A DNA stretch of 64,000 nucleotides from positions 248,001-312,000 of IMG/VR virus record IMGVR_UViG_3300023174_000036. One strand, given 5' to 3'. This document shows positions 12,636 through 30,812 of this stretch, piece after piece. The notes beneath the pieces are model-generated. The model was not told where the DNA came from, searched no databases, and saw only the letters and a program-made list of their open reading frames with translations. Numbering within the stretch: the first letter of the stretch is position 1; every line of letters begins with the position of its first letter. The translations under genes and the position numbers were made by a program.

Positions 12636-12650
12636 ATTATGCTCCTTTCT

Positions 12651-12824: not shown

Positions 12825-12850
12825 TGAGTACCTTTCTTGTTTAAGTAGTT

Positions 12851-12879
12851 ATTATACTACTTATTCCGCAATCAGTCAA
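12851..12879 (-). promoter_or_regulatory. Sigma70-like promoter TTGACT-N17-TATAAT
   Basis: Direct motif match. Confidence 0.75.
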
Positions 12880-13339: not shown

Positions 13340-13348
13340 AATGCCTCC

Positions 13349-13594: not shown

Positions 13595-13603
13595 AATTTT
13601 TCC

Positions 13604-14065
13604 TTAAACAAACCAAATTTCTTCAAAACCTTCTTTGTTGGTAGGTTCTTCCCAATTGTCAATCATACCTTGTACAACTTCCCAAGGCACATCTTTACCT
13701 GGCCTGCTGGCTAAACGTTCTTTAAGAACGTCTACTGGCGGTGTACGGAACACAACTGCAATGTGCTTGTAATTTGGAAGCATATTAAACTTCCTAGCAC
13801 GACTTTTAACTGTGGTGCTAGTCTGATCCCAAATTACAGTATGTTCATGATCACGTGCAAATACTACTTGTTGAGCCATTAATTCTACTGCTGTAGGCAT
13901 ATAATCCTTAAACACTTCTGTGTAAGTCTTACCCCGTGTCTTTGCATAATCTTCTACAAACGGATCGGTACTGACCACAGTCAAACCCAAAGCCCAAATT
14001 TGATCTTTGATCCAAGTGCTTTTGCCTGCGGCAGGAACGCCAATTAACTGATAGCATACGGGCAT
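13604..14065 (-). CDS. P-loop kinase (AAA_33 / polynucleotide kinase-like)
   Basis: GVPAAGKST Walker A, IWDQT, RLASR lid. Confidence 0.8.
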   Translation of the reverse strand: MPVCYQLIGVPAAGKSTWIKDQIWALGLTVVSTDPFVEDYAKTRGKTYTEVFKDYMPTAVELMAQQVVFARDHEHTVIWDQTSTTVKSRARKFNMLPNYKHIAVVFRTPPVDVLKERLASRPGKDVPWEVVQGMIDNWEEPTNKEGFEEIWFV

Positions 14066-14250
14066 TAGATCAACCCTACCATTCTAAAATAATCATCATG
14101 AGCAACATAAAAATCTGTCTTTGGATCCCAGTACTTACCTTCTTTTGGATCATAATACAAAATCCAACCGTTAAAGTTAAACGGGCCCTCCAACTTTGGA
14201 ATTGGACCATAACCCTGCATATCTTGTTTTGGAAGAATCTTAAAACCCAT
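14065..14250 (-). CDS. Small hypothetical protein
   Basis: ORF directly downstream of a promoter and SD, coupled to kinase gene. Confidence 0.65.
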   Translation of the reverse strand: MGFKILPKQDMQGYGPIPKLEGPFNFNGWILYYDPKEGKYWDPKTDFYVAHDDYFRMVGLI

Positions 14251-14279
14251 TTCTCGCTCCTGTGTGTTTGTATGTATCT

Positions 14280-14308
14280 ATTATAACATCAAAAAGAAAC
14301 CCAGTCAA
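14280..14308 (-). promoter_or_regulatory. Sigma70-like promoter TTGACT-N17-TATAAT
   Basis: Direct motif match; -35 lies inside the upstream terminator stem. Confidence 0.75.
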
Positions 14309-14326
14309 CCTACGCCGACTGGGTTC
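14291..14326 (-). terminator. Intrinsic terminator of the DUF2828 gene
   Basis: GAACCCAGTC-GGCGTAGGTT-GACTGGGTTT-CTTTTT. Confidence 0.8.
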
Positions 14327-14351
14327 AAAACTGTTGTTTTATAACAACGGT

Positions 14352-15764
14352 TTACAACTTGTAACGATCACTCATTACAGTCTTAAGCATGATGCCTTCT
14401 GGAGTGAATTGATCCATGTCAGCGGCTAGCAAGCTAGTCATGATTGATGGACTGAATCCACTTACCAATGCGGCACCACTCTTGTCTGCCTTAACAGGTA
14501 CGTTATCTGAACTGTTTAGGTTCCAGAAAACAATCTGTGGCACGCTGTAGCCTGCGGCTTCGAACTTGCGTTCGATCATTTCCATTGCGCTGTCGTCGTA
14601 ACGGGCGCATTGGTTGAACTGCATGTCTGACAAGATCAGCAACATGGCTGGCATGTCGCTAGCTGGTACTGAACCCTTAACCGCAACGTCTAGGATCTTG
14701 TCCATAGCCGCATGTAGATTAGTGCTCATGTCCCAATCACTCTTGCTCATTTGAGCAACCTTATCAACAATGTTACCCTTTAGAGTAACAAGTTGTGGCT
14801 TGTCTGAGAAAGTCAAGAATGTGTCCTTGAACACGCCCTTGTTCTTGTCTGCTAGGTACAAGCCCAAGCTGATTGAAACATCCATGCAAGTTACATTAGT
14901 GTTCTTTCCTGCTGGGCAAGACATAGAACCGCTAACGTCTACGATTGGCATGATGCTAGCATCTCCAACGTAGTTTGGCAAGCTGTCCCATTGTGCGATC
15001 ACATGGTCAGTTTCTGTCTTGTCAAACTTTGCACGGTAGCTACCGATCACGCCCTTAAGGACATCGTGTGGGAAAATTGCCGAAGCATTAACCTTCACTG
15101 ATGGATCCTTAGCAATCAGAGCCGCAACATACTCAGCGAATGCTGGGCTGTGACGGTTGAAAGCCTTCTTGTAGATTCGAGAAGCTACAGAAGGAACGTG
15201 ACTGAAGTTGATGTTATCCCAATCTCCTGCACACATTTGGGTTTCAACAACCTTTGTAAGTGCCACAAGGCTTTTACGATATTGCTTTGGAGTCATGCCA
15301 AAGAAGGCACGAACTTCAGCGGCAATTTGACCCTTACGAGGAGTCCACTTTGCGGCCAAACCGTTGTTAGCACGAAGGGCATCACCCAACATGGTATAAG
15401 CGGCTGACTTCAGCACTGGGTTTGAGAAGACAAAGATGTCATCCCAACGGCCCACTTCTGGAACCTTCTTCAACAGGGCCAAAGCGGCGTCTGGGTCACG
15501 CTTTTCTAGGTGTACTAGAATGTCGCGGAACAGTTGACGTTCACCTGCGCCACCACGGACATCACGTGCCCATTGTGCGATGCGTAGTGCAACGTCTTGA
15601 TTTTCCACATAAGCGGCAGTGAAGTCGCCTGTGATGTCCTTACCACGGCTTGCGCCAATGTTATAGAACAAGTCAACACAAGCCGAAGCTGTTGACTTAC
15701 GTGCCTTCATACCGTTTGCGGTACGGGCTTCTTGATTTGCTACTGCTGTTACAAATGCGTTCAT
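14352..15764 (-). CDS. DUF2828-family TROVE/VWA (Ro60-like) protein
   Basis: RDVRGGAGERQLF, GRWDD, AAKWTPR, INFSHVPSVA, MIDAS DVSGS, ILSDMQF, IVFWNL, VSGFS motifs. Confidence 0.85.
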   Translation of the reverse strand: MNAFVTAVANQEARTANGMKARKSTASACVDLFYNIGASRGKDITGDFTAAYVENQDVALRIAQWARDVRGGAGERQLFRDILVHLEKRDPDAALALLKKVPEVGRWDDIFVFSNPVLKSAAYTMLGDALRANNGLAAKWTPRKGQIAAEVRAFFGMTPKQYRKSLVALTKVVETQMCAGDWDNINFSHVPSVASRIYKKAFNRHSPAFAEYVAALIAKDPSVKVNASAIFPHDVLKGVIGSYRAKFDKTETDHVIAQWDSLPNYVGDASIMPIVDVSGSMSCPAGKNTNVTCMDVSISLGLYLADKNKGVFKDTFLTFSDKPQLVTLKGNIVDKVAQMSKSDWDMSTNLHAAMDKILDVAVKGSVPASDMPAMLLILSDMQFNQCARYDDSAMEMIERKFEAAGYSVPQIVFWNLNSSDNVPVKADKSGAALVSGFSPSIMTSLLAADMDQFTPEGIMLKTVMSDRYKL

Positions 15765-20506: not shown

Positions 20507-21165
20507 ACATATTAATATGCGGAGACAGTTTTGCCGCCGACTGGACAGTTAAATATTCTGGCCAAGGATGGCCAAATTTATTAGCACAGGAGTTTGCTGT
20601 GACTAATCTAGCACAAGCCGGTTGTAGTGAATACAAAATTCTCAAACAATTGGAATCAGTTGATTTAGCTGTGTATGATAAAATTGTCATTTCGCATACC
20701 AGTCCTTATAGGATTTATATCAAAAAACATCCTATACACTACAACGATCCTCTGCACAAAAATTGTGATTTAATCTATACAGATATAAAAGAACATGTAC
20801 TAAAAGATCAAACATTACAACCTATGGTTGACTATTTTGAAAATCATTTTGATTTTGAACATGCAAAATACATGCATACTTTGTTGTGTGAAAAGATAAT
20901 AAAATTATTGGAACCAGTACAAGATCGTGTGTTGCATATTTCCAATATAGATTGGGAAGACTTGTATCAATTTTCAAACATGGTTAATTTTTCTTATTTG
21001 TTTGAAACAAATAGGGGATTGATGAACCATTTTGATTTGGAGGGCAATCAAATTGTATTTAATAGACTCAAAAATTTATTGCAATTGGTTGCGGGGCTTG
21101 GATTTGAACCAAGGATGGCAATGGCTTATGAGACCACGCTGGTGACCGGACCCTCCCCGCGATAA
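20503..21165 (+). CDS. SGNH-like hypothetical protein
   Basis: ICGDSFAAD, NLAQAGCS, C-terminal NH; 3' end runs antisense through a tRNA. Confidence 0.6.
   Translation: MNILICGDSFAADWTVKYSGQGWPNLLAQEFAVTNLAQAGCSEYKILKQLESVDLAVYDKIVISHTSPYRIYIKKHPIHYNDPLHKNCDLIYTDIKEHVLKDQTLQPMVDYFENHFDFEHAKYMHTLLCEKIIKLLEPVQDRVLHISNIDWEDLYQFSNMVNFSYLFETNRGLMNHFDLEGNQIVFNRLKNLLQLVAGLGFEPRMAMAYETTLVTGPSPR
21086..21161 (-). tRNA. tRNA-Met(CAT), initiator-like (C1xA72) with atypical D arm
   Basis: CGCGGGG/CCCCGCA-A-CCA, loop CT-CAT-AA. Confidence 0.8.
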
Positions 21166-21176
21166 CTTATAGTGGT

Positions 21177-21803
21177 TTATGTTGCAATGTCGTAATCTAA
21201 ATTGCCAGCAATACATATCCTATACTCGTCGCTGGTATAAAACGGATGAACGCTATGTGACATCCTTGATGGAAACATAATCATCCTACCTTCCCAACTA
21301 TTATCAACTGGCATGGCATTTAATTGCACTTGACCTAACACATCTGTGTAATGTATATTGAATGAAGGACCTGTTATTGATGTTTTTTCCGATAAAGTAT
21401 TGTGATTTAATTCGTCTGCCATCATAAATGGTACTCGCAACCAGATTACAAAACTAAGTATTCCTTCATGAAAGTGTGCAGACATAAATTCTGTTTTTTC
21501 TTGAAAATTCACCCAACATTTTGTTATCTTTAATTTTCGATTAGTATTCAAATCTCTATAATTAAATGTTGATTTAAACTCGTTCGTTAATGGAATTATT
21601 TTTGACTCTAGATAACTTAAACAATCTATTATTGCAAATTCTTTTTTTACATTGCCGGCATGAAAATGATTTACAAAACTAGCATTCTCGCTATTGAGAA
21701 TAGAATTAACTTCTTTCCACAGAGGTTTTAATTCATCATCTGAAAGCGAGTTTCCTAAAATACCTATATTGGGAAAATGTAGTTGTAAACTTTGATCTAA
21801 CAT
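21177..21803 (-). CDS. 2OG-Fe(II) oxygenase (phage TIGR02466-like)
   Basis: CWVN...HFH...MFPSRMSHSV...RICIAGN. Confidence 0.8.
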   Translation of the reverse strand: MLDQSLQLHFPNIGILGNSLSDDELKPLWKEVNSILNSENASFVNHFHAGNVKKEFAIIDCLSYLESKIIPLTNEFKSTFNYRDLNTNRKLKITKCWVNFQEKTEFMSAHFHEGILSFVIWLRVPFMMADELNHNTLSEKTSITGPSFNIHYTDVLGQVQLNAMPVDNSWEGRMIMFPSRMSHSVHPFYTSDEYRICIAGNLDYDIAT

Positions 21804-21861
21804 TTAAAATCCTTCTACTTGTAAAAATTAATTCCTTATGTTTTTACTTATCAAGTAAATT

Positions 21862-21938
21862 TGGTCGGAGTACAAGGATTCGAACCTTGGACCCCCTGGT
21901 CCCAAACCAGGTGCGCTACCAGACTGCGCTACACTCCG
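21862..21938 (-). tRNA. tRNA-Pro(TGG)
   Basis: Cloverleaf, CCA. Confidence 0.95.
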
Positions 21939-22177
21939 AATTGTTTCTTTCTAATCTTCATTCCAACATAAGTGCCACAAAATGCGCCTGCCATTGCTGG
22001 AATAATTAGCCAGTGATTGGTTGTGTAATTTATAACGGCTACACTTCCTAAAATATAGCAGGCTACACTCCATCCGCTGGCTTTTAATACTTGTTCGTAT
22101 TGTATACATCTCAGATAGTATGTGTAAACAATATCAAGTAAAAAAATTGCAAAAAATGTTGTTATGTAATCTATCAT
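21929..22177 (-). CDS. Small membrane protein
   Basis: Three hydrophobic segments. Confidence 0.65.
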   Translation of the reverse strand: MIDYITTFFAIFLLDIVYTYYLRCIQYEQVLKASGWSVACYILGSVAVINYTTNHWLIIPAMAGAFCGTYVGMKIRKKQFGV

Positions 22178-22181
22178 ATCA

Positions 22182-22255
22182 TGGAGCGGGATAAGAGAAT
22201 CGAACTCTTGACCGAAGATTGGAAATCTGCTGTTTTACCATTAAACTAATCCCGC
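22182..22255 (-). tRNA. tRNA-Gly(TCC)
   Basis: Cloverleaf, CCA. Confidence 0.95.
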
Positions 22256-22260
22256 ATACT

Positions 22261-22351
22261 TTATTAGAATACATTTAAGCCTTTTTCATCACGCTGATGG
22301 TGGCCGGTCCTTGCTACTCAAACTATGTTCAAGCTAAATGTACTTTAATAA
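22261..22351 (-). ncRNA. Stem-capped small RNA A (UUUGAGUAG-CAAGGACCGGCCA motif)
   Basis: Long terminal stem; motif shared with element B at 24274-24406. Confidence 0.5.
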
Positions 22352-22352
22352 A

Positions 22353-22554
22353 GTGTCCGGCTACTCACACCACATGAGCCCCGGACTGAGCGGTTACTCT
22401 GTCCACGTTCTTTTCCATTTAGACGGGCAACGTCCCTGCCTTTGTGATTTCTCAAGTCGTTCCTAAAGAGAACCTTGCGGTAGATCCAACGCACCGTACA
22501 GTTATCGTTACTGTAATGACGCACTTTATTAACGTAAAAGTGTAATCCGGGGTC
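22353..22554 (-). ncRNA. Unassigned ~200-nt multibranch structured RNA
   Basis: Closing stem GACCCCGGAT/GTCCGGGGCTC and several internal hairpins; no ORF. Confidence 0.5.
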
Positions 22555-22558
22555 TTTT

Positions 22559-22634
<76 letters not shown>

Positions 22635-22650
22635 AAGCTATTACTTATTT

Positions 22651-22884
22651 TTAAGTAGTACTAGTACTAGCAGTTCCGGTATCGTTAGTTTGATATCCAG
22701 TAGGGCCGTTTCCACGTAGTGCATTTTTATCACGTGTAGGAGTTTTGATAACAATTTCACTACATAACTGAGCATCAATCATCATTCGCTTGTATTGATT
22801 TCGTTGATCAGCAGTTGCGCCTTTCATCAATCCAATCATGCGTTTTGTTGTTTTACTCAGTTTAAATGTCTTGTTTGGTTTCAT
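22651..22884 (-). CDS. Hypothetical protein
   Basis: ORF with AAGG SD between tRNA genes. Confidence 0.65.
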   Translation of the reverse strand: MKPNKTFKLSKTTKRMIGLMKGATADQRNQYKRMMIDAQLCSEIVIKTPTRDKNALRGNGPTGYQTNDTGTASTSTT

Positions 22885-22903
22885 GTTTTACCTTTTAGTT
22901 ATT

Positions 22904-22993
22904 TGGCGGAACGAAAGAGACTCGAACTCTTAAACCGACTTTCGCCGATCGACGGATTAGCAATCCGCTCCAATACCATTATGGGACCGTTCC
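22904..22993 (-). tRNA. tRNA-Ser(GCT)
   Basis: Long variable arm, G73, CCA. Confidence 0.95.
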
Positions 22994-23019
22994 TTGTTCT
23001 TTTACTTATTACTAATACT

Positions 23020-23104
23020 TGGTGCGAGTGGCCGGAATCGAACCGGCACGACCGAAGCCGAGAGATTTTAAGTCTCTTGTGTCTACCTATTTCACCACAC
23101 TCGC
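23020..23104 (-). tRNA. tRNA-Leu(TAA)
   Basis: Long variable arm, CCA. Confidence 0.95.
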
Positions 23105-23108
23105 AATT

Positions 23109-23339
23109 TTAAACTCGTTCTCGCTTTGTTCTGCCAATGCGGCTAGCTTTGTTCCAATTGTAAACAGCACCATCCGGGCATTTACCATTTGCAACAGTGT
23201 CTACACCAAATCGTCCCACTACTTCAAAATCTGGACCTTTAATAGTTACAAATACCCCAACGGCCTTGGCGTATGCCATTGCTTCGTTTAAGGTTATAAA
23301 TCTTTCTAATTCTCTGTCATTACATATAACTTTGTACAT
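23109..23339 (-). CDS. Hypothetical protein (MYKVICNDRE...)
   Basis: ATG just downstream of the 23346-23374 promoter; the longer ORF-track start lies inside tRNA-Trp. Confidence 0.65.
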   Translation of the reverse strand: MYKVICNDRELERFITLNEAMAYAKAVGVFVTIKGPDFEVVGRFGVDTVANGKCPDGAVYNWNKASRIGRTKRERV

Positions 23340-23345
23340 GTTGTT

Positions 23346-23374
23346 ATTATACTCTCTTCTGGTGCTGTTGTCAA
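23346..23374 (-). promoter_or_regulatory. Consensus sigma70 promoter TTGACA-N17-TATAAT
   Basis: Perfect consensus. Confidence 0.85.
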
Positions 23375-23387
23375 CACTTATTTTATA

Positions 23388-23461
23388 TGGCGTACCCTCA
23401 GGGACTCGAACCCCGACCGACAGTTTTGGAGACTGTAATGCTGCCATTACACTAAGGATAC
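23388..23461 (-). tRNA. tRNA-Trp(CCA)
   Basis: Loop CT-CCA-AA, G73, CCA. Confidence 0.95.
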
Positions 23462-24004
23462 ATATTCTTTAAAAATTTCTTCTGCTTGGTTCCAACACAA
23501 TGGTTTGTTATCTTTTATTAATGGAAAAGAAAAACAATACCTTTCAGAATCAACTGCTGATATATTGTGTAACATACCAACATTGACTAAACTTGGTTGT
23601 CCTACTTGGGCCGAATATACTAGCTCGCAATCCTCTTCCTCTGCTAGTATATAATCAGTTCCTGTTGGAGTTTTTAGACATTTTAATTTACTTGGATCTT
23701 TACAAACAAACCAATTCATTTTTGATGGTGTATTGCAATACACAAAATTAATTTTTACATGATTGTCAAAATCTTCATCGTCCAAATGAATTGGTAGTTT
23801 ATTGTATTCGCCCTCATTGGCTGGATTTGATTTTAAATGAAATAGCTCTGCTTTACCAATTTCTATTTGTAGTGATGACAACCAGTCTATCAATTCTTTA
23901 TTGATTAAACTTTTATCGTACATCGATATTACCGGAGCGTTTTCCAGAAAAACTGGCATAAATTTAACCGGAATATTTAAGTTATGATGGAATGTATTTT
24001 TCAT
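23447..24004 (-). CDS. Hypothetical protein, possible 2OG/cupin fold
   Basis: IHLD...HNI...RY pattern. Confidence 0.5.
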   Translation of the reverse strand: MKNTFHHNLNIPVKFMPVFLENAPVISMYDKSLINKELIDWLSSLQIEIGKAELFHLKSNPANEGEYNKLPIHLDDEDFDNHVKINFVYCNTPSKMNWFVCKDPSKLKCLKTPTGTDYILAEEEDCELVYSAQVGQPSLVNVGMLHNISAVDSERYCFSFPLIKDNKPLCWNQAEEIFKEYVSLV

Positions 24005-24017
24005 ACGTTATTTATTA

Positions 24018-24107
24018 TGGCGGAAGCGGTGAGATTCGAACTCACGGTGCCTTTCGACACGACAGTTTTCAAGACTGTTGCAATAAGCCGGACTCTGCCA
24101 CGCTTCC
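24018..24107 (-). tRNA. tRNA-Ser(TGA)
   Basis: Long variable arm, CCA. Confidence 0.95.
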
Positions 24108-24112
24108 TAATT

Positions 24113-24197
24113 TGGTGCCCCCCAAGAGACTCGAACTCTCACACCTTTCGATACCAGAACCTAAATCTGGCGCGTCTACCAATTTCGCCAAAGGGGC
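24113..24197 (-). tRNA. tRNA-Leu(TAG)
   Basis: Long variable arm, CCA. Confidence 0.95.
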
Positions 24198-24203
24198 AAA
24201 TAG

Positions 24204-24267
24204 AAACACACTAAGGGCAATGCCATCTTACTATCCCAGTATGTCGGGTGTTGCTTAGTGTGCTTTT
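24204..24267 (-). ncRNA. Stem-capped small RNA C
   Basis: AAAGCACACTAAG...CTTAGTGTGTTT terminal stem. Confidence 0.4.
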
Positions 24268-24273
24268 ATATAC

Positions 24274-24406
24274 TTCCATATAGGTGCTCTCTGCGGCGCT
24301 TGAATCCTCGGTAGCCCTTCTCTTCATGGCCGGTCCTTGTACATGGTCGACATTGACAAGTATTTCGGTGTTCCACTGTAGCTACTCAAAGAGCACGTAT
24401 ATGGAA
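24274..24406 (-). ncRNA. Stem-capped small RNA B (UUUGAGUAGC...CAAGGACCGGCCA motif)
   Basis: Stem TTCCATATACGTGCTCT/AGAGCACCTATATGGAA overlapping tRNA-Glu CCA; motif shared with A. Confidence 0.5.
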
Positions 24407-24476
24407 GAGCCAAGGGGAGTCGAACCCCTCTTCTCAGGATGAAAACCTGATGTCCTAACCGATAGACGATGGCTCC
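24402..24476 (-). tRNA. tRNA-Glu(TTC) copy 1
   Basis: Cloverleaf, loop TT-TTC-AT, CCA. Confidence 0.9.
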
Positions 24477-24527
24477 ATATGTAATTTTAATTTTTAATGA
24501 ACGAGACTAATTGCTTAGTATGTGACT

Positions 24528-24556
24528 ATTATATAACAACAATATAAGTTAGTCAA
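24528..24556 (-). promoter_or_regulatory. Sigma70-like promoter TTGACT-N17-TATAAT within tRNA array
   Basis: Direct motif match. Confidence 0.75.
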
Positions 24557-24564
24557 CCTTTATC

Positions 24565-24639
24565 TGGCCGGCCATGCAGGAATCGAACCCACACCCTCTG
24601 TTTCGAAGACAGAGATGATATCCATTTCACCAATGGCCG
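24565..24639 (-). tRNA. tRNA-Arg(TCG)
   Basis: Loop CT-TCG-AA, CCA. Confidence 0.9.
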
Positions 24640-24653
24640 TAATATATATTTAC

Positions 24654-24728
24654 TGGTCCGGCTAGCAGGAATCGAACCCACATTCATGAGGTAGAAGCTC
24701 ATTGTACTATCCATTGTACTATAGCCAG
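24654..24728 (-). tRNA. tRNA-Arg(TCT)
   Basis: Loop CT-TCT-AC, CCA. Confidence 0.9.
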
Positions 24729-24729
24729 C

Positions 24730-24810
24730 TGGTACCCCAGGCGGGATTTGAACCCGCATCTAAATTTCTCCTTTTGAGAGAGACGACTTTGCCAATTTGT
24801 CTACTGGGGC
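24730..24810 (-). tRNA. tRNA-Leu(CAA)
   Basis: Loop CT-CAA-AA, CCA. Confidence 0.9.
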
Positions 24811-24816
24811 ATTGTT

Positions 24817-24892
24817 TGGTGCAACCTCCAGGAATCGAACCTGGTTCAACGGTTCTTCAGACCGCCGCTATGACCACATCAGCTAAAGTTGC
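24817..24892 (-). tRNA. tRNA-Phe(GAA)
   Basis: Cloverleaf, CCA. Confidence 0.95.
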
Positions 24893-24894
24893 AT

Positions 24895-24986
24895 TGGTAC
24901 CAGCGGAGGGGATCGAACCCTCTCAAGAACGCTAATCTGGCGCTAAAAGTCTTATAAGGACTCTCTGACTACCAAGTCTCGCTGGC
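24895..24986 (-). tRNA. Atypical tRNA with TAT anticodon (Ile by anticodon), long variable arm, reduced D arm
   Basis: GCCAGCG/CGCTGGT-A-CCA, loop CT-TAT-AA, 92 nt. Confidence 0.75.
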
Positions 24987-24994
24987 ATTAAAAT

Positions 24995-25070
24995 TGGGGT
25001 GTTAGATGGGGAACGATCCCATACTATCGCTTTCACAGAGCAATGTGCAGACCACTACACTACTAACACC
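24995..25070 (-). tRNA. tRNA-His(GTG)
   Basis: G-1:C73, loop CT-GTG-AA, T loop GATCG variant. Confidence 0.9.
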
Positions 25071-25075
25071 ATAGA

Positions 25076-25149
25076 TGGCACCCGGACTAGGGATCGAACC
25101 TAGGCTAACAGAGTCAAAGTCTGTTGTGCTACCATTACACAATCCGGGA
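25076..25149 (-). tRNA. tRNA-Gln(TTG)
   Basis: Cloverleaf, CCA. Confidence 0.95.
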
Positions 25150-25327
25150 ATAAATATTTGTGTGAAGACTTACGAACACATAACACCGCAAGGGTTACAT
25201 TTTCATCTTTGTTTATACGAAGGTGTATGCTGTGTCATGGTACAGGATGTGTACGACAATACATATTTTGAACTACAGTACTTCACTGATGTTAACAAAG
25301 CATTGCGCTTTATCAATAACTTATAAA

Positions 25328-25401
25328 TGGAGCGGGTAGCGAGAATCGAACTCGCGAATAAACCTTGGCAAGGTTTCAGGTTACCATTACATCATACCCG
25401 C
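25328..25401 (-). tRNA. tRNA-Gly(GCC)
   Basis: Cloverleaf, U73, CCA. Confidence 0.95.
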
Positions 25402-25660
25402 ATAAGAAATTAGTAAAAAGCTCTGAGAAGTTTTGGTCCGCACTCAAGCGAAACATGGCTACCCGCGGTTCACAGCCGCGCCCTACTTGTCTAGCAAACA
25501 TGGAGTATCACTTACTTTCGAGGATCTCCCGGACTGTAATCCTGATCCACCACCCGGTTGAAGTGCAGTTTATAACTGCAAAATCATTTGAGGCTTCCGA
25601 CCTTTGATGATTACTCTTGCGAGACTTCTCGATACCTTGAGCCTTTTACTAATTGCTTAT
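25402..25660 (-). ncRNA. Unassigned ~255-nt multibranch structured RNA
   Basis: ~22-bp interrupted closing stem (AATTAGTAAAA/TTTTACTAATT), nested GAGAAGT/ACTTCTC, GNRA-capped hairpins. Confidence 0.55.
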
Positions 25661-26268
25661 GAAAATTCTGGACGTTTAAAATTTATATTAAACGAAATAC
25701 TTATACGTTCATCATCTGTGTAATTTGCAGGAACACCGTGATTTAACCAGCCCGGAAACAAAATAAATTTACCAATCTTAGGTTCGTAAGATACGTTGTT
25801 TGGAAGATGTTCAAGCAAATATGTTGAAAACTGCGGAACTGGATTCATAAAATTTATGCTGCCGTCATCGCCATTTGTTCTGTAATAATAAACACCTGCA
25901 ATGTCTACACTGCCATGATTGTGTGTATGTGCAAATTCATTTTTTCCAGTATTGGTCATCCAAGATTGTATAATTCTAAATTCTTGTATCTTGCTCACTG
26001 GCACGTCTAGCATTCGCATGTACTCAAACACATGAAACTTCAAAGCGTCAATAAACGCAGTGGTTTGATAGTCCAACAGTAGATTGGATTCGAACGATGT
26101 GTCTGACAATTTGTGTGTGTTTGGCAACCATTGCTCGTTGTGTTTGAACGAATCCTTTGCTTTCAAATCCGCAACTACCCGATCTAATTCTGATTGTACT
26201 GCAATTAATTCGTCGCCCTCAATCACACTGTTATAAATTGGTGTTGCAAAGTATCCATGAACGCTCAT
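25657..26268 (-). CDS. 2OG-Fe(II) oxygenase (phage TIGR02466-like)
   Basis: SWMT...HTHNH...LFPGWLNHGV...RISISFN. Confidence 0.85.
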   Translation of the reverse strand: MSVHGYFATPIYNSVIEGDELIAVQSELDRVVADLKAKDSFKHNEQWLPNTHKLSDTSFESNLLLDYQTTAFIDALKFHVFEYMRMLDVPVSKIQEFRIIQSWMTNTGKNEFAHTHNHGSVDIAGVYYYRTNGDDGSINFMNPVPQFSTYLLEHLPNNVSYEPKIGKFILFPGWLNHGVPANYTDDERISISFNINFKRPEFS

Positions 26269-26304
26269 ACATATCCTTTATTTTAGAATATTTATTTTTA
26301 TGCT

Positions 26305-26379
26305 TGGTGGTAATAGTAGGATTTGAACCTACACCTTGCTCCGTATGAAGGAGGTGCACTACCGTTATGCTATATTACC
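26305..26379 (-). tRNA. tRNA(CAT): elongator Met or Ile2
   Basis: Loop TT-CAT-AC, G1-C72, CCA; identity not decidable by eye. Confidence 0.85.
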
Positions 26380-26380
26380 A

Positions 26381-26481
26381 TATGTAAACACACTAAGGTG
26401 TATTAAGTATGCGGGCTATGCCTATCGCAGTGACTGGGATACCAAACCTGATCTTTTTACAGATTAAAGTATGTTTACATA
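26381..26481 (-). ncRNA. Stem-capped small RNA D
   Basis: TATGTAAACATACT...AGTGTGTTTACATA terminal stem between two tRNAs. Confidence 0.4.
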
Positions 26482-26556
26482 TGGTAGGGGCACAGGGAAT
26501 CGAACCCTGATAGACTGGTTAAAAGCCAGCTATTCTAGCCGTTGAATTATACCCCC
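26482..26556 (-). tRNA. tRNA-Lys(TTT)
   Basis: Loop CT-TTT-AA, CCA. Confidence 0.95.
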
Positions 26557-26560
26557 ATAT

Positions 26561-26636
26561 TGGTCCACTCAGTCGGATTCGAACCGACACCTCATTGATT
26601 AAGAGTCAAGTGCGCTACCATTAACGCTACAAGTGG
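26561..26636 (-). tRNA. tRNA-Lys(CTT)
   Basis: Loop CT-CTT-AA, CCA. Confidence 0.95.
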
Positions 26637-26747
26637 TTGGTCGTAATTAAATTGATTTAATGTGCCAACCAGGACCAATACGGGGTCTAGATTGACACTA
26701 ACGTTTAGCACGTTTCATGTCGTTCTCCTTATGAACATTTTTAAAAA

Positions 26748-26804
26748 CAGGATGCTTATTTTTCAATTAAAAGTTGAATTTTTGAATTTGCTGTTCGCAT
26801 CCTA
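26748..26804 (-). ncRNA. Y-like ncRNA copy 3 (57 nt, ACAGCAA family; Lys(UUU)-like anticodon arm)
   Basis: TAGGATGC-GA-ACAGCAA...TTCAA-CTTTTAA-TTGAA...GCATCCTG. Confidence 0.65.
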
Positions 26805-26808
26805 AACT

Positions 26809-26883
26809 TGGTACTCCGAACGGGTTTCGATCCCGCTTCTCCAACTTGAAAGGCTGGCGTCCTAGCCACTAGACGACCGGAGT
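26809..26883 (-). tRNA. tRNA-Glu(TTC) copy 2
   Basis: Loop CT-TTC-AA, CCA; sequence divergent from copy 1. Confidence 0.9.
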
Positions 26884-26888
26884 ATATT

Positions 26889-26963
26889 TGGTAGCCAATG
26901 ATGGGAACGATCCATCGACCCTCGCCTTATCAAGACGATGCTCTACCACTGAGCTAATTGGCT
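26889..26963 (-). tRNA. tRNA-Ile(GAT)
   Basis: Cloverleaf, CCA. Confidence 0.95.
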
Positions 26964-26968
26964 ATATT

Positions 26969-27044
26969 TGGTGGAGGTGACAGGGATCGAACCTGCGACA
27001 TCTTGCTTGCAAAGCAAACGCTCTCCCAACTGAGCTACACCCCC
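26969..27044 (-). tRNA. tRNA-Ala(TGC)
   Basis: G3:U70, CCA. Confidence 0.95.
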
Positions 27045-27052
27045 ATATTATA

Positions 27053-27802
27053 TTATTTGATGGAGTTTATTTTAACTAGACCAAAAAATTTCAAAATTAA
27101 AATTATCCCATACGCCAGATCAAATTCCCACCATTTTTCTGAAAATTTAGCTTTAGTGGTATCATCATGATGGTTGGCAGCCAACTCTTCGCCGACGTAC
27201 AGCAGTCCTATAGGAAACATGTTCCGAGAACGATCAGCGCCTTTGGCTGGCCTATTTCGATATCCTATTGTGTGACTTAGATAGTTATGCGCACGAAGAT
27301 GGAACTGTGTATATACAAACAAGATAACACCAAATACCACTCCCCATATACCAAACGCAATTAAAGCCAAAATTCCTGCTATTGGATATCTATATTTAGA
27401 ATACTTTACTAATTGATGTTCTAGTTTATCAGTGTATACAGGCACATCGTTACCCCATTTTTCAATTTCCTCAGGAGTCAAATAGTACGCTGGAGTAGCT
27501 GGAGATGGCTCTTGAGTGAAAAACAAATCTATTTTACTGAAGTAAATTGGACTGTGTGGATCATCCGGTGTGTCAGAAGTAGCATGATGCTTTCTATGAC
27601 CCGCAACAAATGCACGGACAGAATCACCAGGATACCAAAAACCTATAAACCATAACCATGTTCTAGAAAAATATTCTAATCTAGTACTTACTATAGAAAC
27701 TGATCGATGGGCCAATATTCTATGAATATAAATTGCATAAACATTGCAAGTTATGAAAAAAATTGTTAGATAACACCACAACATCCACTGATAATCAAGC
27801 AT
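27053..27802 (-). CDS. Membrane fatty acid (acyl-CoA/acyl-lipid) desaturase
   Basis: His boxes HRILAH, HRKHH, NHH; DPHSP; FDL. Confidence 0.85.
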   Translation of the reverse strand: MLDYQWMLWCYLTIFFITCNVYAIYIHRILAHRSVSIVSTRLEYFSRTWLWFIGFWYPGDSVRAFVAGHRKHHATSDTPDDPHSPIYFSKIDLFFTQEPSPATPAYYLTPEEIEKWGNDVPVYTDKLEHQLVKYSKYRYPIAGILALIAFGIWGVVFGVILFVYTQFHLRAHNYLSHTIGYRNRPAKGADRSRNMFPIGLLYVGEELAANHHDDTTKAKFSEKWWEFDLAYGIILILKFFGLVKINSIK

Positions 27803-27862
27803 GTATTGCTCCTTAAATATATTGAATATTTATTGATAACTCAGTATGCTTGATTACTTGAT

Positions 27863-27938
27863 TGGCTCCACAGCCTGGGCTCGAACCAGGGACCAAATGA
27901 TTAACAGTCATCTACTCTACCAACTGAGCTACTGCGGA
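27863..27938 (-). tRNA. tRNA-Asn(GTT)
   Basis: Cloverleaf, CCA. Confidence 0.95.
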
Positions 27939-27945
27939 ATAAACT

Positions 27946-28020
27946 TGGCGGTCCCAAGGAGGATCGAACTCCTAACCTCGGCGTGACAAGCCGACATTAT
28001 AACCATTTAACTATGGGACC
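27946..28020 (-). tRNA. tRNA-Asp(GTC)
   Basis: Cloverleaf, CCA. Confidence 0.95.
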
Positions 28021-28026
28021 TAAATT

Positions 28027-28112
28027 TGGTGGAGTATCCTGGGATCGAACCAGGCGTGCCATTACGACGGCGGATTTACAGTCCACTGCATCACCATTGA
28101 TGCTTCTACTCC
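28027..28112 (-). tRNA. tRNA-Tyr(GTA)
   Basis: Long variable arm, CCA. Confidence 0.95.
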
Positions 28113-28126
28113 ATGTTTTAATTGTA

Positions 28127-28339
28127 ACACTCTCCTTTGACTATGTCAAGCACTATTTCAGGTAGTGTTGGAAAGTGTGTATTAAAGCACTCTTCATGGA
28201 TGAACCCACTTGCCTTACGGCCTGAGAATGCTTTAATACGCTACCATTTTCTTCACACAAGAGTGAATGCCATCCGGTAGGCCGCCCGTTCGCCCCATGT
28301 TTTACGTGCAGGGCAGAGTCCTCGTTACTCTGTATTCAC
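28127..28339 (-). ncRNA. Three tandem stem-capped small RNA units (G 28127-28178, E 28179-28239, F 28263-28339)
   Basis: Closing stems ACACTCTCC/GGAAAGTGT, GTATTAAAGCA/TGCTTTAATAC, GTGAAT/ATTCAC; no ORF. Confidence 0.45.
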
Positions 28340-28347
28340 ACGTTGTA

Positions 28348-28524
28348 CTAGTTTACACTAAACGTTGGTGCTTTCACTAACGCTTCGTGATATACTCTAG
28401 CACGTTCAAACTTATCTTGAATAAGTTTCTGAAGCTGTTCTTTAGTAAGTGTATCACCAAAAGCAGTTTCATAAGCCTGTTCTACAATTCGTTCATTTAA
28501 TTTTTCATAATCTATCTGATCCAT
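28348..28524 (-). CDS. Hypothetical 58-aa protein (MDQIDYEKLNERIVEQAYE...), first gene after the attenuator
   Basis: Translated by eye; strong AAGGAG SD. Confidence 0.7.
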   Translation of the reverse strand: MDQIDYEKLNERIVEQAYETAFGDTLTKEQLQKLIQDKFERARVYHEALVKAPTFSVN

Positions 28525-28542: not shown

Positions 28543-28574
28543 AAAAAACCCCAGGGTTTTTAATCCTAGGGTCC
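28543..28574 (-). terminator. Intrinsic terminator / attenuator hairpin upstream of the tRNA array
   Basis: ACCCTAGG-ATTAAAAAC-CCTGGGGT-TTTTTG. Confidence 0.8.
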
Positions 28575-28600
28575 TTGAAGTTTGCGGTGTATGTTTTACT

Positions 28601-28747
28601 TTACACTACGTCCTCCCGGACCCTGATAATCTCTGGTGTACGATCATATGATAAACTTCCACAATTAATCGTAGACCAACCAGAGGCTATAACGCCTGCC
28701 AGTTTGGGCATCGTATTAAATTGTTGATGTCTAAAATTCGATTGCAT
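28601..28747 (-). CDS. Putative 48-aa leader peptide (MQSNFRHQQF...EIIRVREDVV)
   Basis: Translated by eye; lies between consensus promoter and terminator; contains antiterminator strand AGGGTCC. Confidence 0.6.
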   Translation of the reverse strand: MQSNFRHQQFNTMPKLAGVIASGWSTINCGSLSYDRTPEIIRVREDVV

Positions 28748-28806
28748 TTTGTTTTCTCGTTTAACTCTTTAAAAATTTACTAGCGGAATGCTAGCGTCTT
28801 GTGTTA

Positions 28807-28835
28807 ATTATAGTGTCTTTCAACACCACTGTCAA
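28807..28835 (-). promoter_or_regulatory. Consensus sigma70 promoter TTGACA-N17-TATAAT heading the tRNA array
   Basis: Perfect consensus; second promoter TTGACA-N17-TACAAT at 28904-28932. Confidence 0.85.
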
Positions 28836-28970
28836 CAACTTTTGAAATCTTTTTTGTTGTATTTCTACAACGCTTACACAGGCAGTTGCTTGTGCATGTT
28901 CTTATTGTATAGTTATTTAGTCTTTGTGTCAAGACCATATTGGTAATATGGTCTTTTTAACACATTTTAT

Positions 28971-29108
28971 TTAGAAATTGGCATCCATGTAGTCTTCTTT
29001 ACCTACACCACACTCTGGGCAAGTGAAGTCTGCTGGCAAGTCTTCCCATTTACCTTCTAGTTCTTCGTCGTGGACATGTCCACATACAATACATACATGA
29101 TCGTCCAT
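28971..29108 (-). CDS. Rubredoxin (45 aa)
   Basis: Translated by eye: CIVCGHVHDEE...WEDLPADFTCPECGVGK. Confidence 0.9.
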   Translation of the reverse strand: MDDHVCIVCGHVHDEELEGKWEDLPADFTCPECGVGKEDYMDANF

Positions 29109-29557
29109 TATAGTGTCTCCAATACTTGTTGATATGCGTGAGCATGACGTTGCTCGACCTTTTGTAGTGCGGCAAAACGTTTTTCAGCTTTGGCTAGTAC
29201 TGCGGCAAATTGTTCAGCATGTTCTTTGCTTTCTTCAATTTGATGGCCTGCTTCAAATGCGGCTTTGGTATTGCCTTCGATCTCTGCGGCACGTTTAAAG
29301 TCTGGATACATTGTAGTGAACTCGTATGTTTCACCTTCGATGGCTTTCTCCAAGCACTCGCGGGTTGATGGCTTGCCAATCAGCAATTCCAAATGTCCCC
29401 AAGCGTGTTTGATTTCTTGATCTGCTGTGTGCTCAAAATGTTTTGCAACATCCTCGAAGCCTTCTTCGCGAGCGATCCGTGCGAAGTAACGATACTTGAT
29501 GTGAGCCATTGACTCACCAGCAAGTGCTGACTCCAAATTTTTCAATGTTATTGACAT
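29108..29557 (-). CDS. Rubrerythrin (ferritin-like)
   Basis: ALAGESMA...EIKHA...GETYE...MYP...ESKEH...EQRH. Confidence 0.9.
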   Translation of the reverse strand: MSITLKNLESALAGESMAHIKYRYFARIAREEGFEDVAKHFEHTADQEIKHAWGHLELLIGKPSTRECLEKAIEGETYEFTTMYPDFKRAAEIEGNTKAAFEAGHQIEESKEHAEQFAAVLAKAEKRFAALQKVEQRHAHAYQQVLETL

Positions 29558-29662
29558 AGTGTCTCCTTGTGTGTTTGTACTATTATATAGCCTATTGGAA
29601 CCTCAGGTCAATAGATTTTTACAATAATTATTTCTATTACGCTTATTGGTTTTTTCAATAAT

Positions 29663-29687
29663 AAAAAAGGACCCGAAGGTCCTTTTT
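29663..29687. terminator. Bidirectional intrinsic terminator
   Basis: AAAAAAGGACC-CGAA-GGTCCTTTTT. Confidence 0.8.
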
Positions 29688-29701
29688 AATCTAACCTAAA
29701 A

Positions 29702-30154
29702 TTAGAATGAGTACTTGGCACCAAACAAAACAGTGCTACCATCAAACGTGTTTACACGAGATTGACCTGCTTGATAACGATAATCAGCAGTTAGGGCAAC
29801 AGTTTTGCTAAGTGGGTAGCTTGCACCTGCGCCAACCAATGCGGCATAACCGTCTGCAACACGACCGGCGTTGTCAAGATATACTGCACCAGCCTTAACT
29901 GCAACGGTAGCACCAGCAACAGTGGCAACATCATATGAACCAACTAGGCTCCATTTGTTTTGATCAGTGTTTTTGGTGTAACGATCAAAGCCTGCTGTTA
30001 CCCCCATCTTGCCAAACTTTTCGCCAATAGTAATACCAGCGCCTGGACGGTCGTTTGCTCCGCCAAAGTCGTAGCTACCATTAACGCCAACTTCTACAGC
30101 ACTGGCTGACAATGCGGCCAAGGCCAACACGGATGCGATTGCTAATTTTTTCAT
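29702..30154 (-). CDS. Outer-membrane beta-barrel protein (OmpA/Ail/Lom-like)
   Basis: Signal peptide, alternating beta strands, C-terminal YSF. Confidence 0.8.
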   Translation of the reverse strand: MKKLAIASVLALAALSASAVEVGVNGSYDFGGANDRPGAGITIGEKFGKMGVTAGFDRYTKNTDQNKWSLVGSYDVATVAGATVAVKAGAVYLDNAGRVADGYAALVGAGASYPLSKTVALTADYRYQAGQSRVNTFDGSTVLFGAKYSF

Positions 30155-30225
30155 AATATAATTCCTTTTAAAATAATGACATTTGTCATGCTTATAGTAT
30201 ACATTAGTACTATCTATAGGTCAAG

Positions 30226-30250
30226 AAAAAAGGCACTCGAAAGTGCCTTC
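30226..30250 (-). terminator. Terminator after tmRNA
   Basis: AAGGCACT-TTCG-AGTGCCTTTTTT. Confidence 0.85.
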
Positions 30251-30592
30251 TTTGGTTATTGGTTTACAAGGCTAACCAGCCCCGGAGTTGCGGTTTCTTA
30301 GGCCGCCATTGCAAAGTCTGCATCATTAGCTGAAAAAGCTACTGAAGCTGGAACTTTGAAATACTCGAATGTATTTGCGTTTGCATTTACGAGTTTTGCT
30401 TGATTTACAGTCATCGCCTACTGAGTTGCCGTCTCCATTATCTCACCCTGTCGAAACCATGGCTGGCCCATCATAAACACATTAATGAGGAATCTAGGCG
30501 GATTGCAAGACCCAATGATTAATATGTTTATGGTGGACCAGGTGGGAGTCGAACCCACGTCCAGAATGCCTTCACTTTGAAGGGATTACAAC
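30251..30592 (-). ncRNA. ssrA: Circularly permuted (two-piece) tmRNA
   Basis: Acceptor piece with T arm and CCA at 30531-30592; hairpin intervening segment 30470-30530; coding piece starts GGGCCAG at 30469 (G3:U70); tag ORF 30384-30298. Confidence 0.9.
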
Positions 30593-30608
30593 TATCTCTT
30601 TAACCACA

Positions 30609-30812
30609 TTACTGTGGTTGAATATTTGCTGCCTGCAAGCCTTTTTGACCTTGTACTACATCAAATGATACTGATTGATTCTCTTGCAGAACTTTGAATC
30701 CTGATGTCTGAATCGCTGAGTAGTGAGCAAACAAATCCTCACCACCGTTGTCTGGAGTAATAAACCCAAAACCTTTGGTTTCATTAAACCATTTTACTTT
30801 ACCTGTTGCCAT
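30609..30812 (-). CDS. cspA: Cold-shock protein
   Basis: [15 protein letters not shown] (RNP1), DLFAHYS (RNP2). Confidence 0.95.

Follow-up and report, generated by a model that had tools for sequence, protein, structure and literature searches.

A predicted leader-peptide attenuator with an all-amino-acid leader at the head of a phage tRNA array

Introduction

Phage tRNA arrays are usually discussed in terms of codon usage or escape from tRNA-targeting defences, and how their expression is controlled is essentially unknown. In a 64,000-nucleotide stretch of a giant freshwater phage (IMG/VR record IMGVR_UViG_3300023174_000036, positions 248,001 to 312,000; hereafter the window), a consensus promoter, a short ORF and an intrinsic terminator precede a small gene and a tRNA array. 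A sequence-only reading proposed that these elements form a leader-peptide attenuator that releases the tRNA genes when a ribosome stalls early in the ORF. Here, we asked whether this arrangement is real and conserved, whether the ORF behaves as a translated leader, and what the switch would sense and control.

Results

Organization of the locus

We first examined the elements in the window and found the promoter, the 48-codon ORF, the terminator and the 7-nt complementarity to be present as described. The features, all on the minus strand, are as follows.

28807-28835, minus strand: leader promoter, TTGACA-17-TATAAT
28779-28798, minus strand: predicted 5'-UTR hairpin just after the transcription start
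28601-28747, minus strand: leader ORF, 48 codons plus TAA, encoding all 20 amino acids
28631-28747, minus strand: inferred sensing track, codons 1-39, ending with the Glu codon
28676-28678, minus strand: Trp codon TGG (W24)
28604-28624, minus strand: antiterminator 5' strand, with the core AGGGTCC at 28624-28618, GGAG at 28616-28613 and the upper stem
28601-28603, minus strand: stop codon, in the apical part of the antiterminator hairpin
28568-28590, minus strand: antiterminator 3' strand, whose core GGACCCT at 28574-28568 overlaps the terminator 5' arm
28543-28572, minus strand: intrinsic terminator, stem 28572-28565 with 28555-28548, 9-nt loop, T-tract 28548-28543
28348-28524, minus strand: 58-aa protein of unknown function, predicted helical hairpin
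28120-28335, minus strand: conserved structured non-coding RNA
28121-28149, minus strand: internal promoter, TTGACA-17-TACAAT with TG, embedded in the last hairpin of that RNA
28030-28112, minus strand: tRNA-Tyr (GTA, by reading the anticodon), first tRNA of the array
21086-28020, minus strand: tRNA array of 26 tRNA genes with interspersed genes and further internal promoters

The leader promoter matched the consensus at 12/12 positions. The terminator was composed of an 8-9 bp stem followed by T6-G-T4, and RNAfold gave -14.6 kcal/mol; a simple scanner missed it only because its loop limit is 8 nt. No terminator-like site was scanned on the minus strand between 28543 and the first tRNAs in the window. 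Two elements had been omitted from the sequence-only reading. In particular, a strong promoter (11/12, with an extended-10 TG) at 28149-28121 lies 8 nt before the tRNA-Tyr gene, which was missed by ARAGORN but found with the Rfam tRNA model (33.4 bits, E 7e-4). Additionally, a structured non-coding RNA of roughly 215 nt lies between the 58-aa gene and that tRNA. Further internal promoters were present within the array at 27075-27047, 24556-24528 and 23374-23346.

Conservation of the unit in relatives

About 80 distinct relatives in IMG/VR were found to carry the same unit. A promoter scoring at least 10/12 lay within 110 nt upstream of the leader ORF in 79/79 relatives, of which 49 were perfect, and the pairs of the 5'-UTR hairpin, which was predicted in both the single-sequence and the alignment fold, showed several types (GC/GU/AU, AU/CG/GU) across 62 relatives. 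A same-strand tRNA array followed the unit in 59/60 loci, and tRNA-Tyr was the first tRNA in many relatives. In contrast to the window, no promoter of at least 10/12 lay between the attenuator and the first tRNA in 60/75 relatives, whereas such a promoter was present in 15/75. These relatives share ancestry, so the counts are not independent events.

Megablast of the region against INPHARED found nothing, sensitive blastn found only tRNA-level matches and tblastn of the leader peptide found nothing; no cultured relative is therefore available. A DNA-pattern scan gave a single contig, binned in a Polynucleobacter MAG. The tRNA region of an unrelated T5-like Vibrio phage had small genes before its tRNAs but no all-20 ORF, which indicated that the device is not universal.

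Two mutually exclusive helices

To understand whether the complementarity between the ORF tail and the terminator is more than chance, we compared the duplex between the ORF tail and the terminator 5' arm with shuffled tails. In 76 of 78 relatives, the duplex beat at least 95% of the shuffled tails (median -15.9 kcal/mol, median z -3.25). In the window, AGGGTCC at 28624-28618 is exactly complementary to GGACCCT at 28574-28568, and GGAG at 28616-28613 pairs with 28580-28577. The outermost pair was AU in 46, GC in 24, GU in 7 and other in 1 of 78 relatives, and the covariation score was 0.266 against 0.201 in shuffles (0/500). In diverged relatives, the whole helix was rewritten in a compensatory manner, as in GGGTTCC:GGAACCC, an 11-bp version in one relative, a 15-bp version in another and other versions in two more. 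The terminator stem also covaried; 93.6% of cells were paired and 5 of 8 pairs showed double changes, against 1.4 in shuffles (0/500), with a median energy of -15.5 kcal/mol across 78 relatives. In the fold of the truncated transcript, 7-11 nt of the terminator 5' arm were paired with the ORF tail, so that the two structures are mutually exclusive. A pairwise nucleotide alignment intended to count indels was too noisy to use as evidence.

The leader ORF

The frame of the ORF was open in 61/61 unique close relatives, against 2/61 and 0/61 for the other two frames, and an ATG ORF of 35-51 codons was present in all 79 distinct relatives, including every locus reached independently through the downstream gene. 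In 77 of 78 relatives, the antiterminator 5' strand ended 1-21 nt before the stop, mostly 11-15 nt, and in one it reached the first base of the stop. The motif was kept across frames; in one clade it sits in another reading frame, and nearby indels restore the frame before the stop. However, the Shine-Dalgarno sequence of the leader was weak (a GAG about 10 nt upstream), and some relatives appeared leaderless.

The ORF did not evolve like a normal protein. Diversity by codon position was flat at 0.283/0.238/0.270, against 0.173/0.112/0.254 for the neighbouring gene, and in an alignment of 30 diverse leaders only M1 and W24 were invariant. Where Trp was single-copy, it always sat in the same alignment column (66/66). 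Searches against Pfam and PHROGs gave nothing for the leader peptide.

[quoted passage not shown] All 20 amino acids occurred in 73/79 distinct leaders, against 3.4% of background windows and a mean of 19.8 (max 31) of 79 after column permutation, although a few leaders lacked one or two amino acids. The same was observed for 40/45 leaders in the independently found set, and for 2 of 3 held-out loci, the third having 19. Single Cys, His and Tyr residues moved between positions; Cys was single-copy in 71/79 leaders but was spread over 13 alignment columns. All six split codon boxes were present in 66/79 leaders, against 10.5% of background. In the window, the leader was the only one of 131 ATG ORFs of 35-55 codons to contain all 20 amino acids. 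Only translation can exert such selection, which therefore provides indirect evidence that the leader is translated.

Position of the switch

We next asked where in the ORF a ribosome would decide between the two helices. In masked folding, the terminator was absent from the minimum-energy fold in 71-72/79 sequences with no ribosome or an early ribosome, and it was present in 75-79/79 with the A site 2-10 codons before the stop, which placed the switch point between 12 and 10 codons before the stop. The result for a ribosome exactly on the stop codon depended on the assumed footprint; with a conservative 15-nt 5' footprint, the 7-nt core was left free in 49/79 sequences, and the terminator then wins only with an 18-21 nt footprint, or if no helix can close around a ribosome. 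Removal of the last 9 codons still left all 20 amino acids in 65/79 leaders, whereas removal of 10-11 codons lost Glu. The all-20 segment thus lies upstream of the antiterminator strand, and we infer that the sensing part is the upstream ~39 codons. The sequence-only reading had pointed to the rare Arg codons AGG and CGG near the end of the leader. These codons lie inside the antiterminator strand and are fixed by RNA pairing, and a ribosome sitting on them predicts termination rather than read-through; their role as sensing codons was not supported.

Elements immediately downstream

The first elements behind the terminator are a small protein gene and a structured RNA, not a tRNA. The 58-aa gene has a strong Shine-Dalgarno sequence and the codon-position pattern of a normal gene, and a homologue of 48-60 aa directly follows the terminator in 67/79 relatives. 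No Pfam or PHROG family matched the protein, a profile of the family against PDB sequences gave only chance-level hits, and AlphaFold2 predicted a plain two-helix hairpin at pLDDT 78.7. For the non-coding RNA, RNAalifold on 8 relatives gave 43 pairs, 26 of them with compensatory changes. Rfam at relaxed thresholds revealed no family for the leader or for this RNA.

Discussion

Every comparative test that we could run supported the core of the sequence-only reading, and we consider it probable (about 0.7), on comparative and computational evidence alone, that the unit is a ribosome-mediated transcription attenuator whose leader is a "pangram" containing each of the 20 amino acids, and most codon boxes, at least once. 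In the proposed mechanism, transcription starts at the consensus promoter and a ribosome translates the leader behind the polymerase. If the ribosome runs through to the last ~10 codons or the stop codon, it sits on the 5' strand and upper stem of the antiterminator hairpin, the GGACCCT segment is free to pair with CCUGGGG, and transcription ends at the T-tract. If the ribosome is held up anywhere in the first ~37-39 codons because any one aminoacyl-tRNA is scarce, or if it never loads, the antiterminator forms first and the polymerase reads through into the small protein gene, the structured RNA and the tRNA array. The result would be feedback in which tRNA genes are transcribed more when decoding is slow, and the cause could be host tRNA loss, cleavage by defence nucleases or host shut-off. 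That translation really decides termination, the direction of the response and its physiological trigger are inferences. Making more tRNA would not help against amino-acid starvation, which would also trigger the switch. In this particular phage, moreover, the promoter at 28149-28121 allows the array to be made without the attenuator, so gating is partial and the attenuator cannot be the main control of tRNA output here.

Other explanations appeared less likely. The same RNA switch, with the same need for leader translation, might instead report general translation or coupling status, such as ribosome availability, the stage of host shut-off or ribosome-targeting antibiotics, with the small protein and the structured RNA as its real targets and the tRNA array driven mainly by its own promoters. 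The promoters before and inside the array in the window, the conserved small gene in 67/79 relatives, the conserved RNA and the response of whiB7-type attenuators to many kinds of translation stress favour this view. A general stalling sensor, however, has no need for complete amino-acid and codon-box coverage maintained by compensatory turnover; 12/79 relatives lack the small gene, 80% lack a promoter before the first tRNA, and the unit heads a tRNA array in 59/60 loci. We therefore regard this alternative as unlikely, though it is the strongest of those considered.

An arrest peptide in the manner of TnaC or SecM, pausing in response to one particular ligand or factor, is suggested by the invariant Trp and by a D-R-T-P-E block whose codons are nearly invariant in the main clade, with variation mostly at third positions (CGT/CGC, CCA/CCG). 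Diverged clades nevertheless keep the switch and the all-20 property without this block, its spacing from Trp varies through indels, and the same nucleotides are predicted to pair with the start-codon region and with the terminator 3' arm, so RNA constraints could explain their conservation; nor would such a peptide explain the pangram. It is very unlikely that the ORF is an ordinary small-protein gene with its own terminator. Its presence and length are conserved, it has a promoter and a terminator, and tblastn finds relatives at 50-85% identity, but it shows no third-position excess, only two invariant residues and no protein family match, and its complementarity to the terminator arm is maintained through complete sequence changes. 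A riboswitch-like or protein- or tRNA-binding leader RNA with an incidental, untranslated ORF would be consistent with the strong nucleotide-level conservation, a fold more stable than shuffles (z -3.1) and the structure predicted inside the ORF. The conserved frame, the ATG and stop kept in every relative and the selection on amino-acid composition, together with the absence of any Rfam family match, T-box included, at E below 1, make this very unlikely.

The closest precedent is the whiB7 uORF attenuator of mycobacteria and other actinobacteria, in which efficient translation of a promoter-proximal uORF lets a Rho-independent terminator form and slowed translation lets an antiterminator form. 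It senses many kinds of translation stress, removal of Trp or His codons from the uORF removes sensing of that amino acid, and the M. smegmatis uORF holds every amino acid but Cys (PMC10274678). In contrast, whiB7 uORFs vary in coverage, as the M. tuberculosis uORF lacks several amino acids, and are specifically Ala-rich, whereas the window leader has 3 Ala in 48 residues and full coverage is itself the conserved, compensated trait. The target there is a transcription factor of a bacterium, and the likeness is functional only, with no homology expected.

The amino-acid biosynthesis attenuators of proteobacteria (trp, his, leu, thr, ilvGMEDA and pheA leaders) likewise combine a promoter, a short leader ORF and alternative hairpins sharing one strand, with ribosome stalling giving read-through. 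Those leaders are 14-32 codons with runs of the cognate codons and a 1:2 hairpin that gives termination when nothing is translated. Here, no run is present, the antiterminator 5' strand lies inside the ORF, before the stop, rather than after it, and no anti-antiterminator was found, so no translation should give read-through. No Rfam leader family matched at E up to 1 over 12 kb; the best match over 751 nt was the trpB motif at 20.8 bits against a gathering score of 59 (E 2.8). Antibiotic-sensing attenuators such as those of vmlR, bmrCD and mexXY also couple a translated uORF to an intrinsic terminator (PMC9226507), but they respond to drug-bound ribosomes at particular peptide contexts and control resistance proteins, and none is known to require full amino-acid coverage or to control tRNA genes. 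T-box riboswitches bind one uncharged tRNA directly through a specifier codon and the T-box bulge and need no translation, whereas an ORF is conserved here and neither Rfam search gave a hit to RF00230.

We found no description of a leader-peptide attenuator on phage or bacterial tRNA genes in full-text literature searches, which did not cover subscription-only literature. A bolder reading, which we judge only somewhat more likely than not, is that giant freshwater phages keep the pangram leader by selection as a universal aminoacyl-tRNA gauge that raises transcription of the tRNA array, the structured RNA and the small protein whenever any tRNA becomes limiting. This would be the first attenuator known to control tRNA genes, and the first regulatory ORF in which complete amino-acid coverage, rather than sequence, is the selected trait; it may act as a built-in answer to tRNA-cleaving host defences or to the phage's own destruction of host tRNA.

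The composition signature, all 20 amino acids in 35-51 codons kept by compensatory turnover, is a new and easily searchable hallmark for general translation sensors in other genomes, and such a sensor, in which loss of one amino acid from the leader should abolish sensing of that amino acid, could also serve as a compact synthetic reporter of tRNA or amino-acid limitation. The analysis also exposes a conserved structured RNA and a small protein that would be co-regulated with the tRNAs. A translated gauge containing every amino acid would mean that the phage measures decoding capacity directly and adjusts its tRNA supply.

Organization of the leader region

The elements described here are all on the minus strand. 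They were found in the following order, in the direction of transcription:

28835-28807, minus strand: a perfect sigma-70 promoter, followed by a 5'-UTR of about 55 nt with a hairpin
28747-28601, minus strand: an ATG ORF of 48 codons (the leader ORF), followed by a 25-nt spacer
28572-28565 with 28555-28548, minus strand: the stem of an intrinsic terminator, with a 9-nt loop and then T6-G-T4
28524-28348, minus strand: a 58-aa gene with a strong Shine-Dalgarno sequence
28335-28120, minus strand: about 215 nt of non-coding sequence
28149-28121, minus strand: a second promoter
28112-28030, minus strand: a tRNA-Tyr (GTA anticodon, long variable arm), followed by the rest of a 26-gene tRNA array

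The sequence AGGGTCC at 28624-28618 was exactly complementary to GGACCCT at 28574-28568, which is part of the terminator 5' arm. The sequence-only reading, which had reported the promoter, the 48-codon ORF, the terminator and this complementarity upstream of a small gene and the tRNA array, was therefore correct in every coordinate. The terminator was absent from the output of the consensus scanner only because the loop limit of the scanner is 8 nt. The tRNA-Tyr was missed by ARAGORN but was found by the Rfam tRNA model at 33 bits; it is the true first gene of the array and sits 8 nt after a promoter. Additionally, a second near-consensus promoter (11/12) was present at 28904-28932 on the minus strand, about 100 nt upstream of the leader promoter, with small hairpins between the two (28860-28903); tandem promoters and a similar TTGTA..TACAA hairpin recurred in relatives.

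Related loci

The window is part of IMG/VR contig 3300023174_000036, a 356-kb phage genome. The window has no relative among isolate phages; IMG/VR holds about a hundred related contigs. We reached these contigs in two independent ways, through the leader ORF (63 loci) and through the downstream 58-aa gene (46 loci); the second set is free of any bias towards an intact leader. The same unit was found in L110, a single 6.2-kb contig binned in a Polynucleobacter MAG (JBBAKF010000113.1, 5640-6223), which carried the leader with all 20 amino acids, the attenuator, the structured RNA described below and tRNA-Tyr, with no gene or promoter in between. This contig is probably a phage fragment. A phage-encoded tmRNA of the permuted (two-piece) type was located at 30207-30644 on the minus strand, about 1.4 kb upstream of the leader; it matched Rfam tmRNA_permuted at 136 bits and beta_tmRNA at 126 bits, and a 28-residue tag peptide was predicted by ARAGORN. 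tmRNAs occupied the same relative position in the loci L083 and L096. Together, the Polynucleobacter-binned contig and the betaproteobacterial-type tmRNA give a weak hint to the host.

Covariation of the antiterminator and terminator helices

The comparison of relatives supports the RNA switch. In an alignment of 78 distinct sequences, the outer antiterminator pair was A-U in 46, G-C in 24, G-U in 7 and unpaired in 1, and the covariation score exceeded all 500 shuffles and all slid controls. Most of the "unpaired" cells at two inner columns came from a one-column misalignment of the GGGGTCC clade. The loci that tblastn could not link to the leader were more telling, as they carried the same architecture with the helix completely rewritten on both strands: GGGTTCC with GGAACCC, an 11-bp version in locus L044, a 15-bp version in locus L022, and others in loci L013, L045 and L046. 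The upper part of the hairpin, which holds the stop codon, also changed with compensation. The terminator stem covaried as well; five of its eight pairs had double changes, against 1.4 expected (0/500 shuffles). The two helices share 7-11 nt and thus exclude each other. In 76 of 78 sequences, the duplex between the ORF tail and the terminator arm was stronger than at least 95% of shuffled tails.

The alignment fold also paired the start-codon region (UGCAAUCG) with the conserved GAUCGY of the D-R codons, closing a large domain inside the ORF (28639-28746, minus strand), and CCAG of the T-P-E codons can pair with CUGG of the terminator 3' arm. Both pairings are nearly invariant, so covariation cannot test them.

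Coding properties of the leader ORF

The comparative evidence indirectly suggested that the ORF is translated, although it is not an ordinary protein gene. Its frame was open in 61 of 61 unique close relatives, whereas the other two frames were open in 2 and 0, and every independently found locus had an ATG ORF of 35-51 codons in the same place. In 77 of 78 relatives, the antiterminator 5' strand ended 1-21 nt before the stop; in one, it reached the first base of the stop. In one clade, the conserved GGGTCC motif was read in a different frame, and two nearby indels restored the frame before the stop. Nucleotide diversity was nevertheless flat across codon positions (0.283/0.238/0.270), in contrast to the usual pattern of the neighbouring 58-aa gene (0.173/0.112/0.254). 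Only the start Met and one Trp were invariant across 30 diverse leaders, whose identity to the peptide of the window fell to 14%. In the diverged relatives L022, L026, L029, L031, L044, L045, L046 and L160, the region about 1-10 nt after the -10 box showed that the leader ATG starts 6-10 nt after the -10 hexamer, and these leaders would be leaderless mRNAs; in contrast, the clade of the window has the 5'-UTR of about 55 nt with a hairpin and a weak Shine-Dalgarno sequence.

Amino-acid coverage of the leader peptide

The decisive new observation was that the leader contains all 20 amino acids. Of 79 distinct peptides of 35-51 residues, 73 had all 20, four had 19 and two had 18. Random 48-residue windows of the ORFs of this phage reached 20 in 3.4% of cases, and of 131 ATG ORFs of 35-55 codons in all six frames of the window, only the leader reached 20. 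In the set found through the neighbouring gene, 40 of 45 leaders had all 20, including one of only 35 residues; of three held-out loci fetched later, two had all 20 and the third had 19. We shuffled residues within alignment columns, which keeps site conservation but breaks the links between sites, and the count dropped to a mean of 19.8 and a maximum of 31 of 79. The reason is visible in the alignment: Cys was present exactly once in 71 leaders but in 13 different columns, His once in 68 leaders in 9 columns, and Tyr once in 66 leaders in 6 columns. When one position loses the residue, another gains it.

Codon coverage was broad too. Both boxes of Arg, Ser and Leu were present in 66 of 79 leaders, against 10.5% of background windows; AUA occurred in 84% against 56%, and 76% of codons were distinct against 59%. 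Selection on composition regardless of position can only act through translation, and the only function that we can think of that needs each amino acid at least once is to test the supply of each aminoacyl-tRNA.

Predicted effect of ribosome position

To examine the geometry and direction of the switch, each transcript was folded up to the T-tract with a ribosome-sized stretch kept unpaired.

Table. Sequences (of 79) with the terminator in the minimum-energy fold, by ribosome state.
No ribosome: 8
A site at codon 10, 20 or 30: 7, 8, 8
A site 2-10 codons before the stop: 75-79
At the stop, 5' footprint 15 nt: 30
At the stop, 5' footprint 18 nt: 66
At the stop, 5' footprint 21 nt: 77
At the stop, no helix allowed to close around the ribosome: 79

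The result for a ribosome exactly at the stop depends on the assumed footprint, which is the weakest point of the model. The change-over lay between 12 and 10 codons before the stop. Fittingly, the set of amino acids was complete upstream of that point; dropping the last nine codons left all 20 amino acids in 65 of 79 leaders, and the Glu codon of the conserved P-E pair was the last one needed. The rare Arg codons AGG and CGG, to which the sequence-only reading had pointed, lie in the antiterminator strand itself. They are fixed by pairing, and a ribosome on them predicts termination, so they are not sensors. We found no anti-antiterminator, so a transcript that is not translated at all should read through.

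Comparison with known attenuators

The mechanism class is known, and the closest functional precedent is the whiB7 uORF attenuator. In that system, efficient uORF translation gives termination and translation stress gives antitermination, and experiments show that the amino acids present in the uORF determine which shortages are sensed (PMC10274678). Classical trp/his-type attenuators share the alternative-hairpin logic, although they use runs of cognate codons, place the antiterminator strand after the stop and have a third pairing that terminates untranslated transcripts. T-boxes and all Rfam leader families were excluded by search. Three things appear to be new: the target (tRNA genes, in a phage), the design principle (complete amino-acid coverage as the selected trait), and the co-regulated unknown RNA and protein. 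Full-text literature searches revealed no earlier description. The device was lacking in the tRNA region of L111, the unrelated T5-like Vibrio phage Cilsick (MN966730.1, 73049-83770), where many small annotated genes ended within a few bases of a tRNA gene but none was an all-20 ORF.

Genes downstream of the attenuator

In 59 of 60 related loci, a same-strand tRNA array began 400-1,200 nt after the start of the leader. Directly after the terminator, 67 of 79 relatives had a homologue of the 58-aa protein (48-60 aa) and 12 did not. This protein of unknown function (28348-28524, minus strand) is predicted to be a two-helix hairpin (pLDDT 78.7) and has no Pfam, PHROG or PDB relative. In the relatives examined (alignments of 8 and 12 loci), a conserved, highly structured non-coding RNA of about 215 nt followed, which corresponds to 28120-28335 on the minus strand between the attenuator unit and the first tRNA. 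It has five or six helices, and 26 of 43 predicted pairs showed compensatory changes in eight sequences; conserved loop motifs include AACGAGG and GAACGGGCGGC. It matched no Rfam family, and its function is unknown. The first tRNA came next and was often tRNA-Tyr.

Auxiliary genes were interleaved with the RNA genes at 28971-30154, 27053-27802, 25657-26268 and 21177-21803, all on the minus strand: rubredoxin-like (45 aa), rubrerythrin, an outer-membrane beta-barrel-like protein with a signal peptide, a fatty-acid desaturase and two 2OG-Fe(II) oxygenases. Beyond the distal end of the array, a cluster at 12030-15764 (minus strand) contained a DUF2828/DUF7788 protein (PHROG label "RNA-binding protein"), an AAA_33 P-loop kinase, a dual-specificity phosphatase-like protein and a calcineurin-like phosphoesterase, a set that is reminiscent of RNA-repair functions.

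The sequence-only interpretation, in which a ribosome that reaches the leader end favours the terminator and one that stalls earlier allows read-through into the tRNA array, is supported by strong comparative, though not experimental, evidence, with corrections on the sensing codons and on the extent of gating in this phage. A promoter of at least 10/12 preceded the leader in 79 of 79 loci, whereas such a promoter was present between the attenuator and the first tRNA in only 15 of 75. In most relatives, then, the leader promoter and its attenuator are the obvious source of transcripts entering the array. The window belongs to the minority with an internal promoter, which is embedded in the last hairpin of the structured RNA, and it has further promoters inside the array; no terminator-like site was scanned between the attenuator and the first tRNAs. 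In this phage, the attenuator adds to the transcription of the array rather than fully gating it.
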